A stretch of 63,491 bases of DNA, counting the filler, from Dimorphilus gyrociliatus (lineage: Eukaryota > Animalia > Annelida), in NCBI GenBank assembly GCA_904063045.1. It is 4 parts of 4 records of this genome, joined end to end, with 100 filler letters (N's around TTAATTAATTAA, not from the genome) between each part and the next. Parts side by side here need not be neighbours in the genome. Positions count along the whole stretch, not along the records: positions 48,147 to 56,842 come from CAJFCJ010000296.1; 3 more parts are not named here. One strand, given 5' to 3'. A model generated the notes under the pieces. That model was not told the DNA's origin. It worked only from the letters and a program-made list of their open reading frames with translations, and did not search any database. This document shows positions 3,001 through 56,842 of the stretch, one piece after another. The translations under genes were made by a program, and so were the position numbers. The first letter of the stretch is position 1. Every line of letters begins with the position of its first letter.

Positions 3001-4646
3001 GACATCAAACAAAATTAACTGACCTAAATCTCACAAGCGTCAGGCTCGTTGGAGATGTTGGAAAGCGTTTGTTTCAAAATATTCCTTTCACATTTAGTAA
3101 ACTAGAAGAATTCCACTTCTCTAGTAATTTATTATCAATGGATATGTCTGGTGAATTTGGAAAATTCATCGGAAATCAAAGAAGCTTAAGAGAATTGGAT
3201 TTTTCAGACGCTTATTTAAATAAGGGTGTTGGGAAGAATATATTTGAAAATATTCCATCAACATTCAACAATTTAGAACGTTTGATCATTAAAAATAGTC
3301 TCTTAGATAGTGATATGTCGGCTGCATTTGGAAAATTTATTGGATTTCAAACAAAATTAAAATCCTTGAATTTTGATGATAAAGATCTATCTGGTGAATT
3401 TGGAAGAAACCTATTTGAAAATATTCCTACTACATTCAATAATCTCCAAAAATTAACATTCAAAAATGCTAAATTATCTGGAGATATGTGTACAGCTTTT
3501 GGTAAATTCATTGGAAATCAAACAAAACTGGTAATGTTGAATTTTACCGAAAGAGATTTTACAGAAGGTATAGGAAAGAATTTATTTATGAATATTCCGC
3601 CATCATTCTGCAATTTAGAAAGTATATTATTTGACAAATGTAAATTATCTAGTGACATGACTGGAGAATTTGGACAATTTATTGGATATCAAACAAAATT
3701 AATGTCTATGAATTTCCAAGGAATAAATCTAAAAGGAGATATTGGAAAAAATTTATTTCATCATATTCCCCCTTCATTTCACAATCTGAAACATTTAACA
3801 TTTAACCATATTCAATTATGTTCCGGTATGAGCAAAACTCTTGGAAAATTCATTGGATATCAACGAAAATTATCATCATTGAACTTTTATGCAATTGACT
3901 TATCTGAAGATAAGGGAAGGAATCTATTTCAAGCTATTTCAGTTGAATGCAGTAGCCTAGAAATACTCCAATTCTATAGTTGCAAATTATCCAGTGAAAT
4001 GAGCGATATTATGGGAAAATTTATAGGAAACCAAAAGAAATTAAACACGTTAACTTTCAAATGTATAGATTTAACGCAATTCATTGGAAAGAATTTATTT
4101 GAAAATATTCCACCATCATTTTGCAATCTAGAAAATTTACAATTGTGCGATACTCGTCTGTCCTGTGAAATGAGCAGCGTATTAGGAACATTTATAGGAC
4201 AACAATCAAATATGACGTCATTAACTCTCTATCAAATAAACTTAGGAGATGATATAGGAAGAAATCTATTTCATCATATTAATAAATCATTCTGTAATCT
4301 ACAGAATTTTTATCTTTTATATAATGACTTATCTATAGATGTAAGTTGTTATATTGGAAGGTTCATTGGATATCAGACAAATTTATCAGTGTTGGAATTT
4401 CAAGAAGTTGATTTATCTGATGAAAAAGGAAAATATTTATTTGAAAATATTCCTACAACAGTATGTAATTTGAAATATTTAAAAATTACTAATTGCAAAT
4501 TCTCTAGTGATATAAATCATGTTTTGGAAAATTTTCTCTTAAATCAAATGGATTTATTATATGTATTTGAGAAAGGAAATTTAATAAATGGAAAAGAAGG
4601 CAACATATTTCAAGATCTAAACAGCATCACAAACTATCTCTTATAA
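3..4646 (+). CDS. Large intronless leucine-rich-repeat protein (RI-like LRR, ~56-aa double repeat); 5' end runs off the window
   Basis: The frame is open from position 3 (NKLTQLGLCGFKL...), so the track start at 66 is not the true start. There are 16 well-conserved GKFIGxQTKLxxLxF...GxxLFENIPxxFCNLExL units plus 2 degenerate ones. No stop occurs in >1540 codons. Confidence 0.85.
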   Translation, partial: NKLTQLGLCGFKLREEKHNQFLDFIYHTFNNLLVLKLNDCNLCMNGIQMENLLKKHRYLQQFQMRGNVVNETKKFAFLVSLLHLKNVTILNLPLIEFATKNEENLNIKKCNFALECLDFGENSLEKKVCQSVLRLILCSSQSLKKLNLAKSNIENIEQYFSVVSVENRKESWENSPKNAKYVESGEESQRAMFEKFKDKKQSQENFGANQLKKPLEVVEINDESLNSLSKDSFDERVGNAENVEESQLELFKDATETSESCLNPASRELSDKNQSKYAELTFLNSLNITLLLSSSAVEDLFKMVEMYTELTVLKIVFKSYESIYNLDSNILLNDNNKLTNLNISNSQLNCDFLDIFSNNLQNLTSLKDLNISTNNFGNFTIINFLEKLIETNLKLLKLYIYNQNMTGDRILDIVVLIAKIKSLQVLNSRKKTSFSEDKYFGIKFINQKLFNLHSVAIIKDTFSENIEYESLLLNEFISAKRLNILWNSSSFAIKHLTIGEDLYKAENANLKFRMFNKAQNLISFSIDSSQSKSITYLLPFLTTQTELKRLSLCSIDFSLDGSTLFETISRVVNNLEEFNFSNSKLSSNMSGVFGKFIGYQTNLTTLDLCERDLSGDLGKSLFENISPQFCNLENLKFNNSKLSTNMSGLFGKFIGYQTKLTSLEFNKMNLTDGIGQILFENIPPTFCNLESLQYENCDLSTDASVPLAKFIGNQKHLTLLEFSRTNLAGDVGENLFENITSSSPEFCNLEIFEYSFANLSDNMSNFLGKFITNQRKLLELKFRSVDLIGDFGKNLFENIPSSVNYLENLEFKMCKLSVDMSGLFGEFLGNQTKLTILELVRIDLSGDTGKYLFENITPNFCNLEKIIVKLCKLSANMSGQFGTFIAYQTKITSIEFNRIDLTGDIGLNLLENLQITFHHLDTFIMQNCNLCDRMSGKLGHFIGRQINLRLLRFFSIDFCGETGKEFFGNIPSSFENLEDIDLPQCRISGDMSDVLGKFIGHQTKLTDLNLTSVRLVGDVGKRLFQNIPFTFSKLEEFHFSSNLLSMDMSGEFGKFIGNQRSLRELDFSDAYLNKGVGKNIFENIPSTFNNLERLIIKNSLLDSDMSAAFGKFIGFQTKLKSLNFDDKDLSGEFGRNLFENIPTTFNNLQKLTFKNAKLSGDMCTAFGKFIGNQTKLVMLNFTERDFTEGIGKNLFMNIPPSFCNLESILFDKCKLSSDMTGEFGQFIGYQTKLMSMNFQGINLKGDIGKNLFHHIPPSFHNLKHLTFNHIQLCSGMSKTLGKFIGYQRKLSSLNFYAIDLSEDKGRNLFQAISVECSSLEILQFYSCKLSSEMSDIMGKFIGNQKKLNTLTFKCIDLTQFIGKNLFENIPPSFCNLENLQLCDTRLSCEMSSVLGTFIGQQSNMTSLTLYQINLGDDIGRNLFHHINKSFCNLQNFYLLYNDLSIDVSCYIGRFIGYQTNLSVLEFQEVDLSDEKGKYLFENIPTTVCNLKYLKITNCKFSSDINHVLENFLLNQMDLLYVFEKGNLINGKEGNIFQDLNSITNYLL

Positions 4647-48146: not shown

Positions 48147-48925
48147 CCTTTTCTGTTGATCCCGACATAAAAGGTACAATTATGAAAATGAATTCTTTTT
48201 TATGATTTTCTTATTTGTTACTGATTTAGGTCATAATTGTCTTCTTTATTTTGTCATTACTAACTAAACAAAAACAAATCACGTATCTGGATTAAGAGAG
48301 ATCATAGTCTTCCCCTGAAGATTGTTCATCTTTATCTTCCTCATCTAGTGGTATATTATAATGTTTGATTCTCAGGCGACAAATTAATGATTTCTTCTTG
48401 AATCTTAATAAGAAATGAGGACAGTCAAACAATAGAAGAAGAGGTTGTCTTCTTAACATATGGAGAGTGAAAAGTTGCAAAGTTTGTTGACATATAACAA
48501 CACTTGTTGCATTAATAGTCTTCCTTTTCAAAGAATTTTTTTGTTCACTATGATTTTTCTTTTAGGTGATTTCAATAACATCTTACTTTCTTTGCTTTCT
48601 TCCTCTTCCTCCTCTTGCTCTTCCTCTCCAGATGATATATCAGCTGATTTAATATGACGATTAATAAATCTTGGACTTATGACATTAGACTTCGAATTGT
48701 GACAGACACTAATTTCAAAGCTGGCATCATAGCATCGTTTGGGACTCTTGAAGTGAGAATTCTGTTTCTCTTTTTTGATTTAGTCAAAGTAAACCAAGGG
48801 GTGGCACTACTTTGCTCCATGAGCTCCCCGCGCTCCGGGAATGTTAAATGAACCACAGATATCAGTTGATATCATCTTCACAACCTTATCAGCTGAAAAC
48901 AAATAAATTATATGGATAATGTGTT

Positions 48926-49132
48926 TCATTGTCTTTCATTCAGTATTTGGTAATTACAAACAAGTCTTTTCTTCAAATTTTTCTTCTTTATTAAATAGGC
49001 TGGTAAGGAATGAGGCGATTTTGATTCTTGAATGATTCCAAGTTGTTGCAACTCGTCCAAATGTTTTGTAACTAGTGCTTTTTGTGCTGATGGGACCTGA
49101 TATTCTTTAGAGTAACTCATTTGAGTTGTCAT
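48926..49132 (-). pseudogene. Ty3/Gypsy RT N-terminal fragment, distinct from the contig-B element
   Basis: YQVPSAQKALVTKHLDELQQLGIIQESKSPHSLPAYLIKKK..KRLVCNYQILN. Confidence 0.8.
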
Positions 49133-49258
49133 TAGAAGTGAAAAGGTCTTTTTTGTAAGAAGTTGGATCCCTTTTGTTATTTGTTGTGAATTGCTTCAGT
49201 TTCGCCTTCTCATTATTTTGTTTTTAAGCGTAAAGGTAAACAGTTCACAGGAAAGAGG

Positions 49259-49480
49259 TTGAAGTCCATTTTAGAATTCTACATAATTAAGCAACATTTG
49301 TGTGTCCCATATGGCCCACGAGGAAATTCATTTCTTGAAAGAGCACATCTTAACAGTCTGAATGGTTTACTAGTACTTAAAGCGACTCCCATCAAAGATG
49401 CACTCTCATTCCTGAACAGTGCTCATAATGCAACATTTCAAGTGCTTTCTATTCAAGCCCGACCCAGGTCGTACTAAGAA
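49259..49480 (+). pseudogene. Retrotransposon integrase core fragment
   Basis: IKQHLCVPYGPRGNSFLERAH..LNGLL...NSAHN matches the P-x-P-x-x-N-x-x-x-E-R region of integrase. Confidence 0.65.
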
Positions 49481-50541
49481 GACTCAAGTTCCCTCCTTCA
49501 TCTGTACAAAACATTAAACAACTTCTTCTCGAAGCCAGGCGACTGGAAGAGAAATCAGCCAAGGATTATCAGTTTCGCCTTTAAAAAAATCACAGAGTTA
49601 GATTTTTTACCTAAAAATTTATTCACTAATAGCAAAACAACAATAAATTGCAACAACCTCATGCTGGGCCATTCTTGGTCATATAAGACTTTCCTGCTTA
49701 TAACTACCTGATAGCCCAGAAAGGTTTTGCCTTCTTTTAGAAGAACATGTACATAAAAATAGTGAAAAACGACCTGCCAGAAAAATATCATTCAAGAACA
49801 AAACTATGTTTGAAATAGATTTACCAGAACGTATAATCACAGGAGAAATTGCACTTATTCAAAGTTTTCAATAACTTTGACATGATGTGTTGCCCTGCTC
49901 ATGTTGAAGAGATATTCCTAGAGCCTGGTGAATGAAAACAGCTTCTAGATAAGGAACTTTTATTATTTCATTGGTTGATCCCGGAGTCTTTCCTCTGCTC
50001 CGATCCTGTATCTCTTGTGCTTTTGGATAGTTTTTCGTGATTGTCATCCTTTTCTAAGAGAGGTGAAAAACTTTGCAATTTAAAGATGAAGACAATTTGA
50101 ATAAGAGACACGTCAGGATCATGGATCGGTGCATGGCACGTGTAAACAGCTCTTTCATAATGGCAGTTACCGCCTTGTGGAAATTAAAAAGCTCCACCGA
50201 GCATTCGAACCCCTTTACATCAAAATGGACTGTGATAAAACAGAATCTGCTGATTAATCTGATTGAAAAATACAAACATCTGAATAATTCAACAATTCAA
50301 TAATTTTATATTATATTTTCTTGTTTTCTTGTTTATAATTTATTGTTTTCTTTCTCATATTCCAATAAATCCTAATCCATCAATTTAACTGATTCATTAA
50401 TTGTCATTCCTTCTTTTATTCTTTCTTTATATCTTAACATTCTTCTTATAAGAAATAGATTATTCATTTCTAGAAATGTATAAACTTAATTGTGATTTAA
50501 GAAATCTATTTTGTCTAAGATTAACATCTTGTTTTGTAATA

Positions 50542-51221
50542 TGTACTCTGTTATATTGTAATTGTTGGAATTTCTGGTTTGTCACAACTGTAATTGTCCT
50601 TTCCAATCATTTACCAATTTGCCAAAGTATTGGTTCTAATAGAACCTTTAAAGTTCGTCTACAAATAGTCTAACAAATGTAATTTCGGTAGAAATGAATC
50701 AACAAAACACCAGTATTTCGTCCAAAGAGTATGTATTGAGTAAAATGAGCACCTAGTTCTAAAGGGGCTGACAGAAAACGTCCCCAAGTGAGATTTTTGA
50801 AAGCAACATTTCGGATTGAAAATTGGTTAGGGCGAGTGAAGTAGTCATTGATTTGTAGTTAGGGGGTCAGGGGTAATCAAAAAGGTTAGGGAGTGAAAAG
50901 GGCTAGGTTAGGGTTAGGGTTAAATCATGCATTTGGGGACATTTTCTGTCGTAACCATATACTTTTTTAAGGTTGATAGTTGACAAATTTCAATGTTGAC
51001 AAAAACAAAAGTAACATTTGAAGACAAAGAAAAGTTCTAAATATGCTCATGTTTCCATTGTTTTCCTTCTCCAAATAATAGTTGAATTTCAAAGGTTTGA
51101 GAATTGCATAAAATGTAACATTTTTAATAGGACAAGCCCAACAATGAAGAAAACATGTAGATTGTATATTTGACCATTTTTATAGTCTACTTTAATAATG
51201 ATATTCAATTGATTGAGTTAG
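50542..51221 (-). mobile_element. Partial LTR of the contig-B Gypsy family, interrupted by a MITE
   Basis: 50542-50763 matches LTR ~30220-30439 and 50957-51221 matches LTR ~29885-30150 (reverse complement). Confidence 0.85.
50764..50956. mobile_element. TTAGGG-bearing MITE, 193 bp, in the opposite orientation to 13802-14009
   Basis: TIRs GGGGCTGACAGAAAACGTCCCCAA / TTGGGGACATTTTCTGTCGTAACC. Confidence 0.8.
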
Positions 51222-51675
51222 CAGAACATTTGTTAGATTTATTACAAACTGAGCAAATCCATGTTGTAGTAGCTTTTCTTTTGATTTTAACATTAAAAGT
51301 ATAGTCATTAAAGATTAAAATGTCTTTTACTCTCTGACTTGCTTTTGGTAAAATTTTAAAATGACATTTGTCTTTGTCATTTTTAGTTTGATCAATATCA
51401 CTTACAAAAGACTCTTTCTGCACATCAGAGATTTCCCCAGCAGTGACTGTAATCAGTGTATTTATTGCAATTTCATTACTGAACAAAATATCCTCCTCAT
51501 TCTCAACACTTTGAACTCCTATTGAACAATCAGTAAGGCTTTCTATGCTAGCAAAAGAAAATGATAATCTCAATGCCTCTCTGGATGCATTTTTGCTTTG
51601 TTCTTTTTCTTCATCTACTGTATTCTTTTTAAAATTACAACACAATTTCTTTTTGAGATTTGACAACTGAAACAT
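51222..51675 (-). pseudogene. N-terminal FLYWCH fragment of a MULE transposase, cut by the LTR
   Basis: DILIFNDYTFNVKIKRKATTTWICSVCNKSNKC parallels DILLNDGYSFVVKHKTPSSTIWVCSV at ~40920-41000. Confidence 0.7.
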
Positions 51676-51880
51676 AATGGTGAATTTGTTGCTGGATCTG
51701 GATTGCTTGAATGATTGATATATTCTTTTTCAAACCTTAGTAAATAATAATTTGTGAAAAAGTGAAATTGATAAGATAAGTCAGAATGATTGGATGATAT
51801 ATATTTAAAAGTTGATAATAATGTACAACTTTTGTTATATTTAACATGCTTGAACTCTATTATTTTATGCAACTTATACA

Positions 51881-52416
51881 TGTACATCTTACAACCTATG
51901 CAAGAAAATGCTATAACATTGGCCAAACAGAGGTTTGATTAGTCAGCTTGAAGGCTCATTTTTAATTACCAATAAAGGTTTGGCCAAGTTATAATTTAAT
52001 TAGCCTTCCTAAATGTTGAAGCTTGTAACATTTGTTACCAAAGATAAATATGAACTACACATTTCCGCAACTGTAAAGTGATGATTGGATGTCAGAGGCA
52101 AACCTCAAAGTATATAAATCCACACTATTTTCATTCTAAGCATTCCTATCTGGACTCAACAACCTGGGAAGATAACCTGGAAACAACCTCCAGTGGAACC
52201 ATCCATCTACTCCTCAACATTGGAAGGCAGTTTGGTAATTTGGCAACCTGCTATTATGAACTATCTACTCTGCTATTGAACTCTCATATTGTTACTTGCT
52301 TAAGTATTATAGTTTTGAATAAACCATTTTATTTTAAACATTTGTTTAAAGTTTTGAGTAGAACCAGTATTGTTATAACTTGCAAATGCATAAATTTCCC
52401 AAGCAAGAGCAGTACA
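51881..52416 (+). mobile_element. LTR of a sister Gypsy family (TGTAC...GTACA, 536 bp)
   Basis: It ends AGTACA, followed by a 4-nt spacer and the PBS TGGCACAGTGGACAGGAT (52421-52438). TATATAAA lies at 52111. The left boundary is inferred. Confidence 0.7.
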
Positions 52417-52477
52417 AATTTGGCACAGTGGACAGGATCATTATTTTGGTTTATTCAAAAGTTTGGAGAAAGTAAAT

Positions 52478-53304
52478 ATGGCAGAAGGAGGAAATGGAAA
52501 TGCCATTGGGGCAGTGACAGACTCTAACCCTTCAACTCCAGCAACTCCAACAATTACAATTCAACCAGCAGAAATGTCAGAAAGGCAACAAAGATAAATT
52601 GAAGACTATGATAGATTGGTGAGTGAAATGAAAAGAAATCAAATCATAATTCCACCAGATCATGGAAATGGAACACATCACCCAGCACAGAACCCAAATG
52701 TTGATATCACAACAGTAATTCAAACATTAAGGGCTGCTTGGGACCGCCCTCAAAGAACTATTCTCAAGTTGTATGATGGAAGCAAGGAGTGTTCAAAATT
52801 CAAGGAAGACTTTAATCAGACATGCCATGCTTATGGTTGGGTTGGTGAAGATGTTGTGAAAGCAAATCTTTCAGATTATTTAACTGGTTCTACAAAGGAT
52901 TTGGTGTTGGCTCTGGATGGAGAGCCTACTGTAGAGGAAATGTGGAAAGCCCTCCATGACGAATTTGATCTGGATCTTATGGCTGATCAAGAGAAACTGT
53001 TTAGTCTAAAGCAAATGCATGCGAAAGTGTGGTTCAGTTTGTTAACAGAGCAAAGAAATTGATAAAGAGGCTTTCTCTACCTAGACCAGTGGAACCTCAA
53101 GTGCTTGCAACTATGAAAGAAATGAGACTAATGGAAGTTTTACAAAGAGGATTACAAGAGGAAATTCTACATTTAGTGTACACCTTACATCCTAAATGTC
53201 AAACATTCGCAGAACTATATGATGCTGCTAAGCAAGCAGAAACCTCATTAAAACTAACTCAGAGAAAACCAATCACAATGGTGTCCAAATTGGAAACTCA
53301 ATAA
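52478..53304 (+). pseudogene. Degenerate gag of the sister family
   Basis: LKLYDGSKE..KFKEDFNQTCHAYGW...YLTG...MWKALHDEF is collinear with the contig-B Gag. It has an in-frame stop and a frameshift. Confidence 0.8.
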
Positions 53305-53317
53305 GATTACCACAAGT

Positions 53318-53755
53318 GGATGCGACAGAAGACATTCACAAATCAGTGCTTTTACTCTAACCCTAACCCAGCCTTGGCTGTAGCTAACTTTTTGCATTAC
53401 CCCTAACCCTTAGAGGAGACCCTACTAAGTACAAATCAGTTGCTGTTTTCTTCTGCCTAACCATTTCTCAATTTTTTGGTTAGGATGTTGTAAAATTTTA
53501 ATATTATTTTGTGTAGATATTTTTCAATTAATAAAAGCTGTTCTCTCCTCTGTCTGCCTGTGGGCATTTTCTGTCAACTTGTGGATGTTTTCTGTAAGCT
53601 TGGGGACGTTTTCTGTTCTTTAGTTTATTTTATATAATTCTTTTTTTTTAGTGAAATCATGAGATATATCAAAAAAGAGTCTATTTTTCTATATCATCAT
53701 TGTAAAAAAGGTATAATTTTTTCAATTTTTTTGGGGACGTTTTCTGTCTGAACCC
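53318..53755. mobile_element. Longer MITE (~440 bp) of the same family
   Basis: Left end GGATGCGACAGAAGACATTCACAA and right end TTGGGGACGTTTTCTGTCTGAACCC. Internal CCCTAA repeats, plus extra TIR-core copies at 53561-53618. Confidence 0.65.
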
Positions 53756-53989
53756 AGATTTAGATATCTCAAGTTTCTACAATTTCATTCCACTTGGTGA
53801 TCAGATTTTTGGTGAAAGCACACTTCCTATGAACACTTTCTATTAAAATAAAAAAATATTTGAAAATGTCTAATTTTATCTCAAAAACATTGAAATATCC
53901 CAAGAATTTTTTGATTTGGTCCCTGGTGGAAGTATTAGAAAACATGAAAAACAACCAGAAGATATTGAAATTGTGCACCAAGTTTTTTT

Positions 53990-54590
53990 GTCAGGGTTTT
54001 GTTTTTCGATTGGCTGTCTGGGCTCTTTAATCTCTTTGGGCGCATCAGGTGTTTGACTCCTGGATCGAAAATATCATAATCTTTATTGAGAATTTCACAA
54101 GATTTCATAATCTTCCGGATTAAATTCTTTATTGATATAGTCTACTATATTCATTCCATTGTATATTTCGGGAATAATATCATCTTTATCTTTTCTAAGG
54201 TAATTATTGAGCTCATCAAATATGTAATTTGCATCTCAATATCGTTCATTTTTGCAAGATCTGTGTTCAAAAGATCAGGGCTGTCAATGATTTGCCAGTC
54301 TAATTCATGGAAACCAAAATGATCTAAAAATAGAGATCTGGTCGTAAATGGATTATGTGATATGGCTGAACATCTATATCAGCAGATGAGAGAATATTCA
54401 TGAAAGAAGATTTTCCTGTGTTGGGCAGTTTTAAATTTCGATTTATCATAAAGCACATTTATAAGATCATTATAAAATGGATGGATATCATCTACATGTG
54501 GAAAAGACCTGATAATAACTGTCAACTGTCTAATGTATTCATTAGAAGAAGCTTCTTCCCATTTTTCAAACTTGACATTGTCTATTAAAT
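53990..54590 (-). pseudogene. NOG1: NOG1 nucleolar GTPase pseudogene with internal deletions
   Basis: Four conserved blocks in shifting frames: [50 protein letters not shown]...WQIIDSPDLL..MNDIEMQ and DIIPEIYNGMNIVDYI. Intronless. Confidence 0.85.
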
Positions 54591-54611
54591 AGTGTATTTC
54601 AGAATCTAAAA

Positions 54612-55177
54612 TCTCCTAAAACAAAAGGTTTGTCACCAGGAAAGTGCTTATAATTCCTTGAATTGTTTTTGCCCATCATAAGTGCCCATGATTGTTCAAT
54701 ACAATTAGCAAATAAAATCTCGAATCCTGAGTTTTTAAGCACTTTTTTGTCTTTTGAAGGTTTAAGAGGCACCAAAAATTCCATTAAAATTTTTCTTGTA
54801 CCTTGATGGAGCAATTGAAAAAGAGAATTTGGAGTGTTTGTTCCTACACCTTCCCAAATCAATAAACATGTTTGACCAGTTGTAATTCTGTTGAGAGTGG
54901 CACATTTGGCCATTAATTTCCATTTCTACTGGCTGTAAATGAAGATAAAAGTTTTTCAAATACTGATCAGATGCCACGATACACTTATTATCATAATTCC
55001 AGCACAACTCTTGCTAGTTTTTTCCTCAATTATTTTCAAAGCGACTTGTGCATTCAACATTGTTTCCAGTGTTGTAAAGGTTTTGCTCATGATTATAAAA
55101 AGTGTCTCTTCAGGATCGATTTTATCGAATGTCATGTACATTTTGACTGGATCAATGTTAGACACGAAATGAACATT
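54612..55177 (-). pseudogene. PGI: Glucose-6-phosphate isomerase pseudogene, microsporidian-like, internally deleted
   Basis: [74 protein letters not shown] and HFPGDKP. The GGRYS region is missing and there are frameshifts. Confidence 0.88.
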
Positions 55178-55195
55178 TGCATCTTCTCAGATGCA

Positions 55196-56133
55196 GAAAG
55201 TAGAGCAAAGAGCAGAGGAACTTGTTTTAGTTCACCATTCTTCTTTAGGAAGCTATGAATTGAAAATAATTGCTTAAATGGAGGATTGACAACCTTAAAG
55301 GTGCTATCCATATACCATATTTTAGACAATGCCAGTAATTCCATTTGTTTAGTAGTTGCAAATATTAAAATTTGCTCATTGTTTACTGATAGATCATTTT
55401 TAAGAAAACCATCTGGTAAGAAAGTGTGATGTAAAGGAAAAAACAATGTTTTTGGTTCCTCTGGTTGATTTTTTTGTCTGTGATAATTCACCACTTGTTT
55501 ACAACTACTCATACTGGGAAAATTAGAAATGTTTTGTTTTTGGATAAATGTATCTTCAACAATTCTCTTGGCACTTGTTTGAGTGTCCATTTCTGATCTT
55601 TGTTTTATGATAACTTTCATATCAATAATTTCTTTTAAATTTAATTTGGGAGAATGATTGTGTGATTTTGAACCCAAAGTAAAATTACCATCATTCTCAT
55701 TGACACTACCAGGACATCAATCTTGTTTGATATTAATGTCACTACATCTCCAAATTCTTGATTTATTTCTTTGGTTTTTGATAGTATATGAGAATCCATC
55801 ATGAACAAGTAATGGCTTTCCTTTTTGACTCCCATTTTGGAAAGTTTTAAATGATCCATCACTCCTTAGAACAACATCATCTACATCTTCAAATGAGCTG
55901 TCTTCATGTTGGTTTGTGTTGTGATCAAAAGGAAAATAATCCTCTTTTGTATTCAAATGCTCCATTGTAACATCTTCAGCAAAAACTTCTCTTTGTGGTA
56001 TTTGTGTATTTTTAATGACTACATTATCTATTGGTCCTTCTATTTGCTTAATACTTTCACCATCATTGGCAGATTTGTCTTTTTCATTATTTGCAATCAA
56101 AAGATCATTAATGTCATCAGCAGTGGCTTCCAC
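55196..56133 (-). pseudogene. FLYWCH-MULE transposase pseudogene, truncated after KQVPLLFALL
   Basis: KGKPLLVHDGFSY..IWRCS..HNH and IWYMDSTFKVV..FKQLFSIH. In-frame TGA at 55717. Confidence 0.85.
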
Positions 56134-56685
56134 TTGATTATTTCTAAAAATTTTTTCATCATCAATTCTCTTTTTTGCTGTTAAAGTATTCTCATCACAT
56201 CTTCTTAAAACAATTTGTAATGAATAGTTGTTGATTTTCAGGCAAATTTGACAAAAGCCATCTATATATTAAGAAAAATGGTGTCAAATTGAAAAATATG
56301 AACATTTAACTTACCATTTGAACAAACCTAATGAGTTGTATGCTTACATAGAGAGCATACACCTCTTTTTTGTTTATTAATTTTCTTCTTACAAGCATAA
56401 CAGAGAGATGCCATATTGAAATTATGTTCTGAAGAAAATGATTTGCTTCACAGGTTAGAGAGTATATCTGGCAAAAAGGATGTACAATAAATACATTGCA
56501 TTTATGTTGAAGTCTTTACTCTCTTCAAATCATACATATAACATATAATAAAAATAATTCAAACTTTTTACATATATGTGACCACACTTGTTGCTATAGT
56601 ACAGTGTAAAACATTCTATTTAAATAGAAAAAACTGGTAGAAACATTATGAAATCTATTTCAAATTCAGCATATTTGGTAAGCTT

Positions 56686-56766
56686 GAAGCCTTTTTTAAT
56701 CAGCTTGCAGCCTTTTTCAATCAACCTGCAGCCTTTATCAATTGCAGCCTTTCTTAACCTGATCCC
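56686..56766 (-). repeat. Probable MULE terminal repeat with GCAGCCTTT subrepeats
   Basis: Four (G/A)AGCCTTT-type units ending GATCCC, like the other MULE/MITE ends, upstream of the minus-strand transposase. Confidence 0.5.
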
Positions 56767-56842
56767 AAAAAACTGATGGTGTCAAGAATTTATTGATGAG
56801 ATCAGCAAGTGAACTCCAACAGAAAAAACACCAGATCATATA

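Follow-up and report, generated by a model that had tools for sequence, protein, structure and literature searches.

A decayed microsporidian PGI remnant joined to broken NOG1 pieces among transposon debris: a probable relic of Pseudoloma-lineage DNA in the chromosome of an animal host

The window studied here is a stretch of DNA of 63,491 nucleotides (filler included), composed of four joined parts of the genome assembly of the annelid Dimorphilus gyrociliatus (GCA_904063045.1). The analysis was carried out on the part that comes from contig CAJFCJ010000296.1 (48147-56842; all positions are those of the window). Within this part, two housekeeping genes, the glucose-6-phosphate isomerase gene PGI and the GTPase gene NOG1, are represented in a single-copy stretch of 1.2 kb by broken minus-strand pieces with internal deletions. 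The PGI remnant extends from 55188 to 54627 and runs into a collinear NOG1 remnant, which extends from 54615 to about 54000. Translation of 53700-55300 in the three minus-strand frames, combined with Pfam profiles, revealed that the two remnants are arranged head to tail on the same strand. Upstream of the PGI remnant, again on the same strand, a FLYWCH finger and the beginning of a Mutator-like element (MULE) transposase domain are located. On the opposite side, an AT-rich spacer (53749-53937), which matched neither Pfam families nor the parasite loci, separates the NOG1 remnant from the arm of an inverted-repeat element. Rfam and tRNA scans of 48147-56842 gave no match. The PGI-NOG1 stretch encodes nothing usable and is without plausible function of its own.

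The closest named full-length relative of the PGI remnant was the PGI of the microsporidian Pseudoloma neurophilia (P0160), which is carried by contig LGUB01000246.1 (locus L009), and the residue numbers given below are those of this protein. Fragment A (54996-55188, minus strand) corresponds to residues 320-384, the SKTFTT region. Fragment B/C (54627-54997, minus strand) corresponds to residues 476-599 according to both DNA and protein alignment. At the DNA level, 55188-54996 aligned without gaps to positions 2738-2930 of the Pseudoloma locus (74.6% identity), and 54997-54627 aligned with one gap to positions 3206-3575 (77.6% identity). Three minus-strand pieces were recognized by the PGI profile of Pfam (PF00342), two of them significantly: 54959-55186 (E 9e-17, fragment A) and 54602-54925 (E 5e-13). 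The third piece, 54765-55013 (E 5e-4), was below Pfam's cut-off. All PDB matches of the PGI pieces were glucose-6-phosphate isomerases. Apart from residues 320-384 and 476-599, the protein of 683 residues is lost, including the N-terminal 319 and the C-terminal ~82 residues. Residues ~385-475 were removed by one clean deletion of 275 bp (~92 codons) with the joint at ~54997. This deletion takes out the VGGRFS/GGRFS motif, the counterpart of GGRYS, and, as its length is not divisible by three, the reading frame changes at it. In the active-site block, LQPVEMEING stands where Pseudoloma has LQQLEMESNGK, and just past this block a 1-nt insertion at ~54908 shifts the frame once more. Complete PGI domains with GGR[YF]S and an intact EMESNGK block in a single frame were not found. 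The original prediction had described a PGI fragment without some 90-100 amino acids including GGRYS and with an altered active site (QPVEMEING), and this description proved correct on every point tested.

The NOG1 remnant consists of minus-strand pieces that are collinear with human NOG1 and spread over four different frames. A fragment of the N-terminal helical domain (NOG1_N, 54382-54615) covers human residues ~52-95 and was identified by Pfam (E 4.5e-9) and by PDB alignments. It is followed by the P-loop (G1) piece with the motif NTGKSS (54327-54458; human residues 176-199), which had a weak Pfam match to MMR_HSR1, by the G2-G3 piece (54154-54378; human residues 199-245), and by the NOGCT piece (54098-54235; human residues ~400-450; Pfam E 2.8e-7). 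The adjacent segment 53938-54097, also on the minus strand, is probably the C-terminal tail of NOG1. It has no Pfam match, and its translation contains the motif DIFDPGVKHLMRPKR, which we take to resemble the conserved C-terminal block RH.FD.KPKHL.SGKR of NOG1. The order of the domains (NOG1_N, GTPase, NOGCT) is that of an intact NOG1. The G motifs (GxxxxGKS, DTPG, and NKxD) are not intact in one frame: G1 is off-frame, G3 reads DSPD, and the would-be G4 region was deleted. About 60 residues are missing ahead of the P-loop, and ~145 residues, including the G4 region, are missing after switch II. The loss ahead of the P-loop agrees with what had been claimed from the sequence, as does the replacement of DTPG by DSPD, since DTPG is kept in all solved NOG1 proteins compared (human, two yeasts, and Chaetomium). 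The description of NOG1 as shattered was less apt: its pieces are still collinear and are separated by internal deletions, so that the gene is better called gutted than shattered or shuffled.

The joint between the two remnants lies in the zone 54555-54627. The PGI homology at the DNA level stops at 54627, and the NOG1 homology starts from human residue ~52; the last ~82 codons of PGI and the first ~35-50 codons of NOG1 are missing at this place. The direct passage from one fragment to the other, which had been noticed in the original prediction, was confirmed. The gene order around PGI was different in the parasite genomes available for comparison. The order in Pseudoloma neurophilia is LRR-PGI-BIR, with the contig stopping 83 bp past the BIR gene. 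In a related genome (L010), PGI lies between an acetyltransferase gene and a BIR gene, followed by an unknown gene, PCNA, and onward, and no NOG1 was present within 10 kb on either side of PGI. The linkage of PGI and BIR is, hence, conserved in this clade. No NOG1 adjoined PGI in the Gurleya vavrai locus or in the run-derived microsporidian locus L004. In the Trachipleistophora contig, which ends ~1.2 kb after PGI, no NOG1 was found upstream of PGI, and none was present in the fetched parasite loci as a whole. Since PGI is followed by BIR and not by NOG1 in the relatives, the joint in the window is considered to be a rearrangement, as had been supposed; within the available flanks, the two related parasite genomes do not have NOG1 next to PGI. 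An inherited adjacency of PGI and NOG1 in the donor was rejected as the source of the joint as far as the two nearest genomes with flanks fit for use are concerned, the true donor being unsampled.

The origin of the PGI remnant was determined by database search and phylogenetic reconstruction. When 1.84 billion library representatives were searched exhaustively by profile with a PGI piece of 108 amino acids as the query, the best match was P0001, a Pseudoloma-like protein from a run-derived contig (128 bits, 65% identity). The next matches, where named, were all from microsporidia: Trachipleistophora hominis, Gurleya vavrai, Tubulinosema ratisbonensis, and Cucumispora dikerogammari. Microsporidian proteins scored 99-128 bits with this piece, whereas mammalian PGI, scored via PDB, reached ~41 bits. 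When the three homologous pieces were combined into one sequence with the breaks left as gaps, this composite was 77.5% identical to the Pseudoloma neurophilia protein over 182 amino acids, 67.6% identical to P0001, and 39-42% identical to bacterial PGIs; the DNA identity to Pseudoloma over the retained parts was ~77%. In the maximum-likelihood tree of 44 sequences, the composite was the sister of Pseudoloma neurophilia (support 100/97). The clade, which also contained P0001 and Trachipleistophora, was nested in Microsporidia (100/100). The outgroups of this tree were bacterial and unnamed sequences with no named animal PGI among them, and the contrast with animals is that of the PDB scores; two candidate representatives that were tested for inclusion were not clearly animal. 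According to the alignments and the tree, the PGI remnant evidently derives from a microsporidian gene, its nearest relative being that of Pseudoloma neurophilia. This agrees with the earlier impression that the wording of the protein is microsporidian rather than animal; the clustering with animals that had been named as the refuting result was not seen, animals being judged by score.

Both proteins closest to the remnant, the PGI of Pseudoloma (L009 1780-3831) and P0001 (L001 944-3001), have a Lys/Glu-rich N-terminal extension of ~150 residues, and their length is 683-685 amino acids vs. ~510-530 in other microsporidia. Microsporidian-type PGIs were also met under animal names. P0153 (KAJ8909533.1) from the beetle Exocentrus adspersus falls into the same 90%-identity cluster as the PGI of Tubulinosema ratisbonensis, which points to contamination or transfer. 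P0169, a PGI marked 'UNVERIFIED_CONTAM' from a 1.95 Mb contig of the louse Menopon gallinae, grouped with Tubulinosema-like microsporidia. The contig of the latter is probably a cobiont chromosome and possibly an insertion.

Over residues 199-245, the NOG1 fragment shared 43-49% identity with the human and Schizosaccharomyces pombe proteins, while these two were ~89% identical to each other over the same residues (counted by hand from printed alignments). A copy of the host gene with a few percent of decay would be far closer to the human protein. Extreme divergence is typical of microsporidian orthologues. The divergence of the NOG1 fragment would thus point to a donor that evolves very fast, and an animal gene is very unlikely. 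In addition, the NOG1 remnant and the microsporidian PGI are contiguous in one single-copy contig. Two metagenome scans with NOG1 pieces revealed no relative, and an Atlas search with the NOG1 piece yielded generic GTPase clusters only.

These results bear on the simplest alternative, namely that the host's own PGI and NOG1 gave rise to the fragments as processed pseudogenes. The fragments have no introns, as a processed pseudogene would, and nothing else was found in its favour. The position of PGI inside Microsporidia with full support, together with a microsporidian score ~3 times higher than the mammalian one, refutes this explanation for PGI. The NOG1 fragment is much farther from animals and fungi than those are from each other, which makes the same explanation very unlikely for NOG1. 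For the locus as a whole, its probability is negligible.

Several lines of evidence indicate the decay of the PGI remnant. Its end branch in the maximum-likelihood tree was 0.26 vs. 0.071 for Pseudoloma, i.e., 3.7-fold longer. With P0001 used as the third sequence, the changes specific to the window numbered 17/13/42 at codon positions 1/2/3, and those specific to Pseudoloma numbered 10/2/21. The excess of changes at positions 1 and 2 in the window copy indicates relaxed constraint. The remaining bias towards the third position indicates that part of the divergence arose while the gene was functional, and the donor was, therefore, a relative of the sequenced Pseudoloma and not identical to it. 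A fit of a uniform neutral component gave ~10-12 changes at each codon position over the 182 codons, which roughly corresponds to ~6% of neutral change. Judging from these counts, the PGI remnant has evolved free of constraint at the protein level for part of its history. The assumption of an old and decayed fragment was borne out by this codon-position pattern together with the frameshifts and deletions.

On the PGI side, the remnants are bordered by a dead transposase gene of the FLYWCH-MULE type (55135-56447, minus strand), of which the first exon, a 53-nt intron, the FLYWCH finger, and the initial ~60 residues of the MULE domain are preserved. The FLYWCH domain (PF04500) was detected at 55720-56268 (Pfam E 3.9e-8). 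Homologues of this transposase include P0155 (60% identity), P0157 from Dimorphilus gyrociliatus, and P0159 (PF10551). The intron (56262-56314, minus strand, 53 nt) has canonical GT-AG borders (GTAAGT...ATATAG), and without it the translation matches the annotated Dimorphilus gyrociliatus protein P0157 in length residue for residue. Two premature stops were found: a TAG (56328-56330) in the place of a Trp of the relative, and a TGA (55717-55719) in the place of an Arg of the relatives. If this Arg was encoded by CGA, a CGA-to-TGA change would account for the TGA stop, and this would count in favour of an animal genome. The remaining ~250 transposase residues, as known from P0159, are absent from the analysed piece. 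Homology to four proteins ends at 55183-55195, and the PGI homology begins at 55183-55188 (tblastn and blastn), i.e., at the joint of the truncated MULE and PGI (55183-55195) the two homologies meet or overlap within a few bases. Thus, the MULE on one side of the fragments, which had been reported before, was found again, with its FLYWCH finger and with homology up to 55183-55195. Over ~380 codons, the transposase has two stops and no frameshift. It is less decayed than the insert and, therefore, looks younger, which suggests a later arrival.

The neighbourhood of a MULE raises the question of whether the PGI-NOG1 chimera could be the cargo of a transposon (Pack-MULE or Helitron), parasite DNA not having been inserted directly. 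The fragments come from unrelated genes, share one strand, and abut the MULE remnant, and exchange of transposons between microsporidia and animals has been documented (PMC4202319). The structure of the locus speaks against capture: no terminal inverted repeats enclose the MULE together with the cargo, which is required of a Pack-MULE, and the transposase is cut inside its domain instead of being replaced between intact ends. The much lower decay of the MULE frame would also make the carrier younger than its supposed cargo. Moreover, the PGI-NOG1 stretch is single-copy, with a depth of 24.7 vs. at least 500 for each of the flanking repeats. We consider the capture of the fragments by a transposon to be quite unlikely.

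On the NOG1 side, the flank had been described as a miniature inverted-repeat transposable element. It is indeed a repeat and can be specified as the right arm (53317-53748) of an element of ~3 kb with inverted arms, whose partner arm is located at 50769-50957. The right arm contains GGGGACGTTTTCTGT as direct repeats as well as a TTAGGG-like motif. The two arms are connected by an 18-nt perfect and a 57-nt imperfect inverted match and share the arrays of GGGGACGTTTTCTGT. The composite element (50769-53748), in the arms of which a telomere-like GGTTAGGGTTAGGG motif occurs along with arrays of a direct repeat of 15-21 nt, contains a second FLYWCH relic (51208-51729), a segment resembling a long terminal repeat (51780-52560), and a gag open reading frame (52598-53301) nested in it. 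The gag-like frame was assigned to retrotransposon gag by an Atlas search.

The integrity of the locus was examined in public sequencing runs. In run X1, an exact contig of 1342 bp covered 53620-54961 with a depth of 24.7, and an exact contig of 290 bp covered 54935-55224 with a depth of 38.4. The two contigs bridge the border with the repeat arm, the internal joints of NOG1, the PGI-NOG1 joint, the 275-bp deletion, and the MULE-PGI joint, with at least 38 bases beyond each joint. The segment 55177-55200, which had been marked for a check of read support, is spanned by the shorter of them. The depth of the insert was like that of other unique parts (28.7 at 51344-51755), from which it follows that the stretch is single-copy, and the exactness of the contigs leaves no mis-join at the k-mer level. 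The summed depth of the flanking repeats ranged from 500 to 250,000; it was ~55,000 at 53340-53534 vs. ~25 for unique sequence and ~200,000-250,000 in the segment resembling a long terminal repeat. On either side, the PGI-NOG1 stretch is physically linked to the debris of high-copy transposons. A joint of 53651 to 55540 in X1 was disregarded, its shorter side comprising 22 bases in AT-rich sequence. In runs X2 (labelled as another organism) and X3, the flanking repeat families occurred at far lower depth and the unique stretch was absent, and these runs were uninformative in this respect.

The same data bear on an assembly artefact, that is, a contig of a contaminating parasite misjoined to host repeats. 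The contig is short, the assembly is fragmented, and both outer joints are located at high-copy repeats, where assemblers err. Against this explanation, a separate assembly of a public run gave exact contigs across all the joints, and the depth of the insert equals that of the other unique parts. The deletions and frameshifts are also unlike what the PGI and NOG1 of a live contaminant would have. An artefact is, in our opinion, very improbable.

No other contig in X1 had at least 85% identity to the PGI-NOG1 stretch, although a more diverged copy would escape this search; a close live donor is, therefore, not evident in the run. As for the composition of the sample, the longest contig of X1 was 252 kb and the average length was less than 600 bp, which indicates that the sample holds at least one compact and well-covered genome, of a microbe or a parasite, beside a repeat-rich one.

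It has to be considered which genome the contig belongs to, that of a host or that of a parasite. The ratio of observed to expected CpG was 0.29 in the left flank, 0.00 in the right flank, 0.42 in the insert, and 0.78 in the Pseudoloma locus. In the right flank (55187-56842), not a single CpG was present in 1656 bp at 30% G+C, where ~37 were expected. The six fetched microsporidian loci had ratios of 0.59-1.36, and the contig of the closest MULE relative (L007) had a ratio of 0.12. The depth of the repeats implies families of thousands and up to ~10,000 copies relative to unique sequence. One of the MULE relatives is from an annelid, and others lie on contigs of 3.0 and 4.5 Mb. Judged by CpG depletion, copy numbers, and MULE relatives, the flanks probably belong to the genome of an animal host.

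There are observations that weigh against this assignment and against the reading built on it. Inside the insert, 7 of the 14 CpG sites of Pseudoloma are replaced by TG or CA, but 4 of the 6 CpG sites of the window are TG in Pseudoloma, and these counts make the signal of CpG decay within the insert weak. The contigs of X1 total only 122 Mb, and the 25x component may be either a small host genome or the genome of a parasite accompanied by a host at low coverage. No unique host gene was found in the analysed piece. The comparison of the NOG1 remnant covered NOG1 of animals and fungi. X1 is possibly the source sample of the assembly, in which case its contigs are not independent reads, and the support for the joints comes from short-read contigs. 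Finally, repeats have been reported to be hypermethylated in microsporidia (PMC12449221), and the depletion of CpG alone is, therefore, no proof of an animal genome.

Several of these points fit an alternative in which no transfer to a host took place: the contig would be part of the own genome of a repeat-rich relative of Pseudoloma, and PGI and NOG1 would be decayed duplicates in a graveyard of transposons. A pseudogenized paralogue would occupy the same position in the tree, a long branch sister to Pseudoloma. The G+C content is alike (30-35%) in the insert, the flanks, and the Pseudoloma DNA, and the genome of Pseudoloma is reportedly unusually rich in transposons for its size. The small total of X1 contigs with the longest of 252 kb, as well as the hypermethylation of microsporidian repeats, would also be in line with a parasite genome. 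The families of ~10,000 copies are, however, far above what would fit a genome of the Pseudoloma type, and the right flank devoid of CpG lies outside the range of the six microsporidian loci. The nearest MULE relatives, found in an annelid and on megabase-sized contigs, likewise speak against a parasite genome, and X1 had no contig of a functional paralogue at the identity level searched (a more diverged copy would be missed). We regard the own-genome explanation as unlikely, but as one to be reckoned with.

Taken together, the evidence makes it likely that the stretch is a non-functional relic of nuclear DNA of a microsporidian of the Pseudoloma lineage, residing in a repeat-rich and CpG-methylating chromosome, most likely that of the animal host of the parasite. 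With somewhat less assurance, we lean towards regarding it as a germline-fixed 'endogenous microsporidian element' that has been integrated long enough to accumulate several percent of neutral change. Its formation could have started with parasite DNA reaching germline nuclei. Pseudoloma neurophilia occurs and is transmitted inside eggs (PMC3781086), which makes access to the germline plausible for this lineage. End-joining at a chromosome break may then have integrated the DNA, which would have arrived in several fragments or in a larger block that was later reduced by deletions. One of these processes, the joining of fragments or the reduction of a block, would have placed PGI beside NOG1; either is compatible with the data. 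Subsequent decay would include the 275-bp deletion in PGI, at least two deletions in NOG1, the frameshifts, and the point changes. Transposons would have landed beside the segment, and a later deletion probably took away both the 3' part of the MULE and the 5' part of PGI.

Transfers from eukaryotic parasites to the germline of animals are far less documented than those from bacteria or organelles, and for microsporidia only a one-sentence mention was found in the literature (PMC12558613). The locus described here could serve as a worked example in which the donor lineage is named, the breakpoints are mapped, and the decay is quantified; it would show the existence of such insertions and the course of their decay. 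It would also be a molecular fossil that may help to date the association of the host with microsporidia. Integrated relics of this kind can mislead both contaminant filters and screens for parasites based on housekeeping genes, which should be taken as a warning. If the proposed origin is true and a further insertion in the same genome is real, at least two events would have occurred, i.e., the transfer from parasite to animal would be recurrent in this host.

Among known systems, the PGI of Pseudoloma neurophilia (P0160) shares its lineage-specific wording with the window copy. It differs in being followed by a BIR-domain gene instead of NOG1, while the window copy is frameshifted, partial, and altered in its active site. 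Pack-MULEs and Helitrons resemble the locus in having chimeric pieces of unrelated genes beside transposon sequence; here, in contrast, the chimera is single-copy and without enclosing ends, the transposase is truncated but partly kept, and the genes are foreign to the carrier. Insertions of Wolbachia DNA into host genomes, as well as nuclear copies of mitochondrial and plastid DNA (NUMTs and NUPTs), are alike in that pieces of the genome of an intracellular resident are found in host chromosomes, often mosaic, pseudogenized, shrinking, and in a repeat-rich setting. In the present case, the donor would be a eukaryotic parasite, a microsporidian, and ~1.2 kb survives. The closest parallel is given by the insertions from microsporidia into hosts mentioned in one sentence by Khalaf et al. 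(2025; PMC12558613), which were found without current infection. The direction of transfer and the phylum of the donor would be the same, and here, too, no close copy of a live parasite was present in X1. The anatomy of those cases was not given, whereas the donor lineage, breakpoints, deletions, and decay have been worked out for the locus described here.

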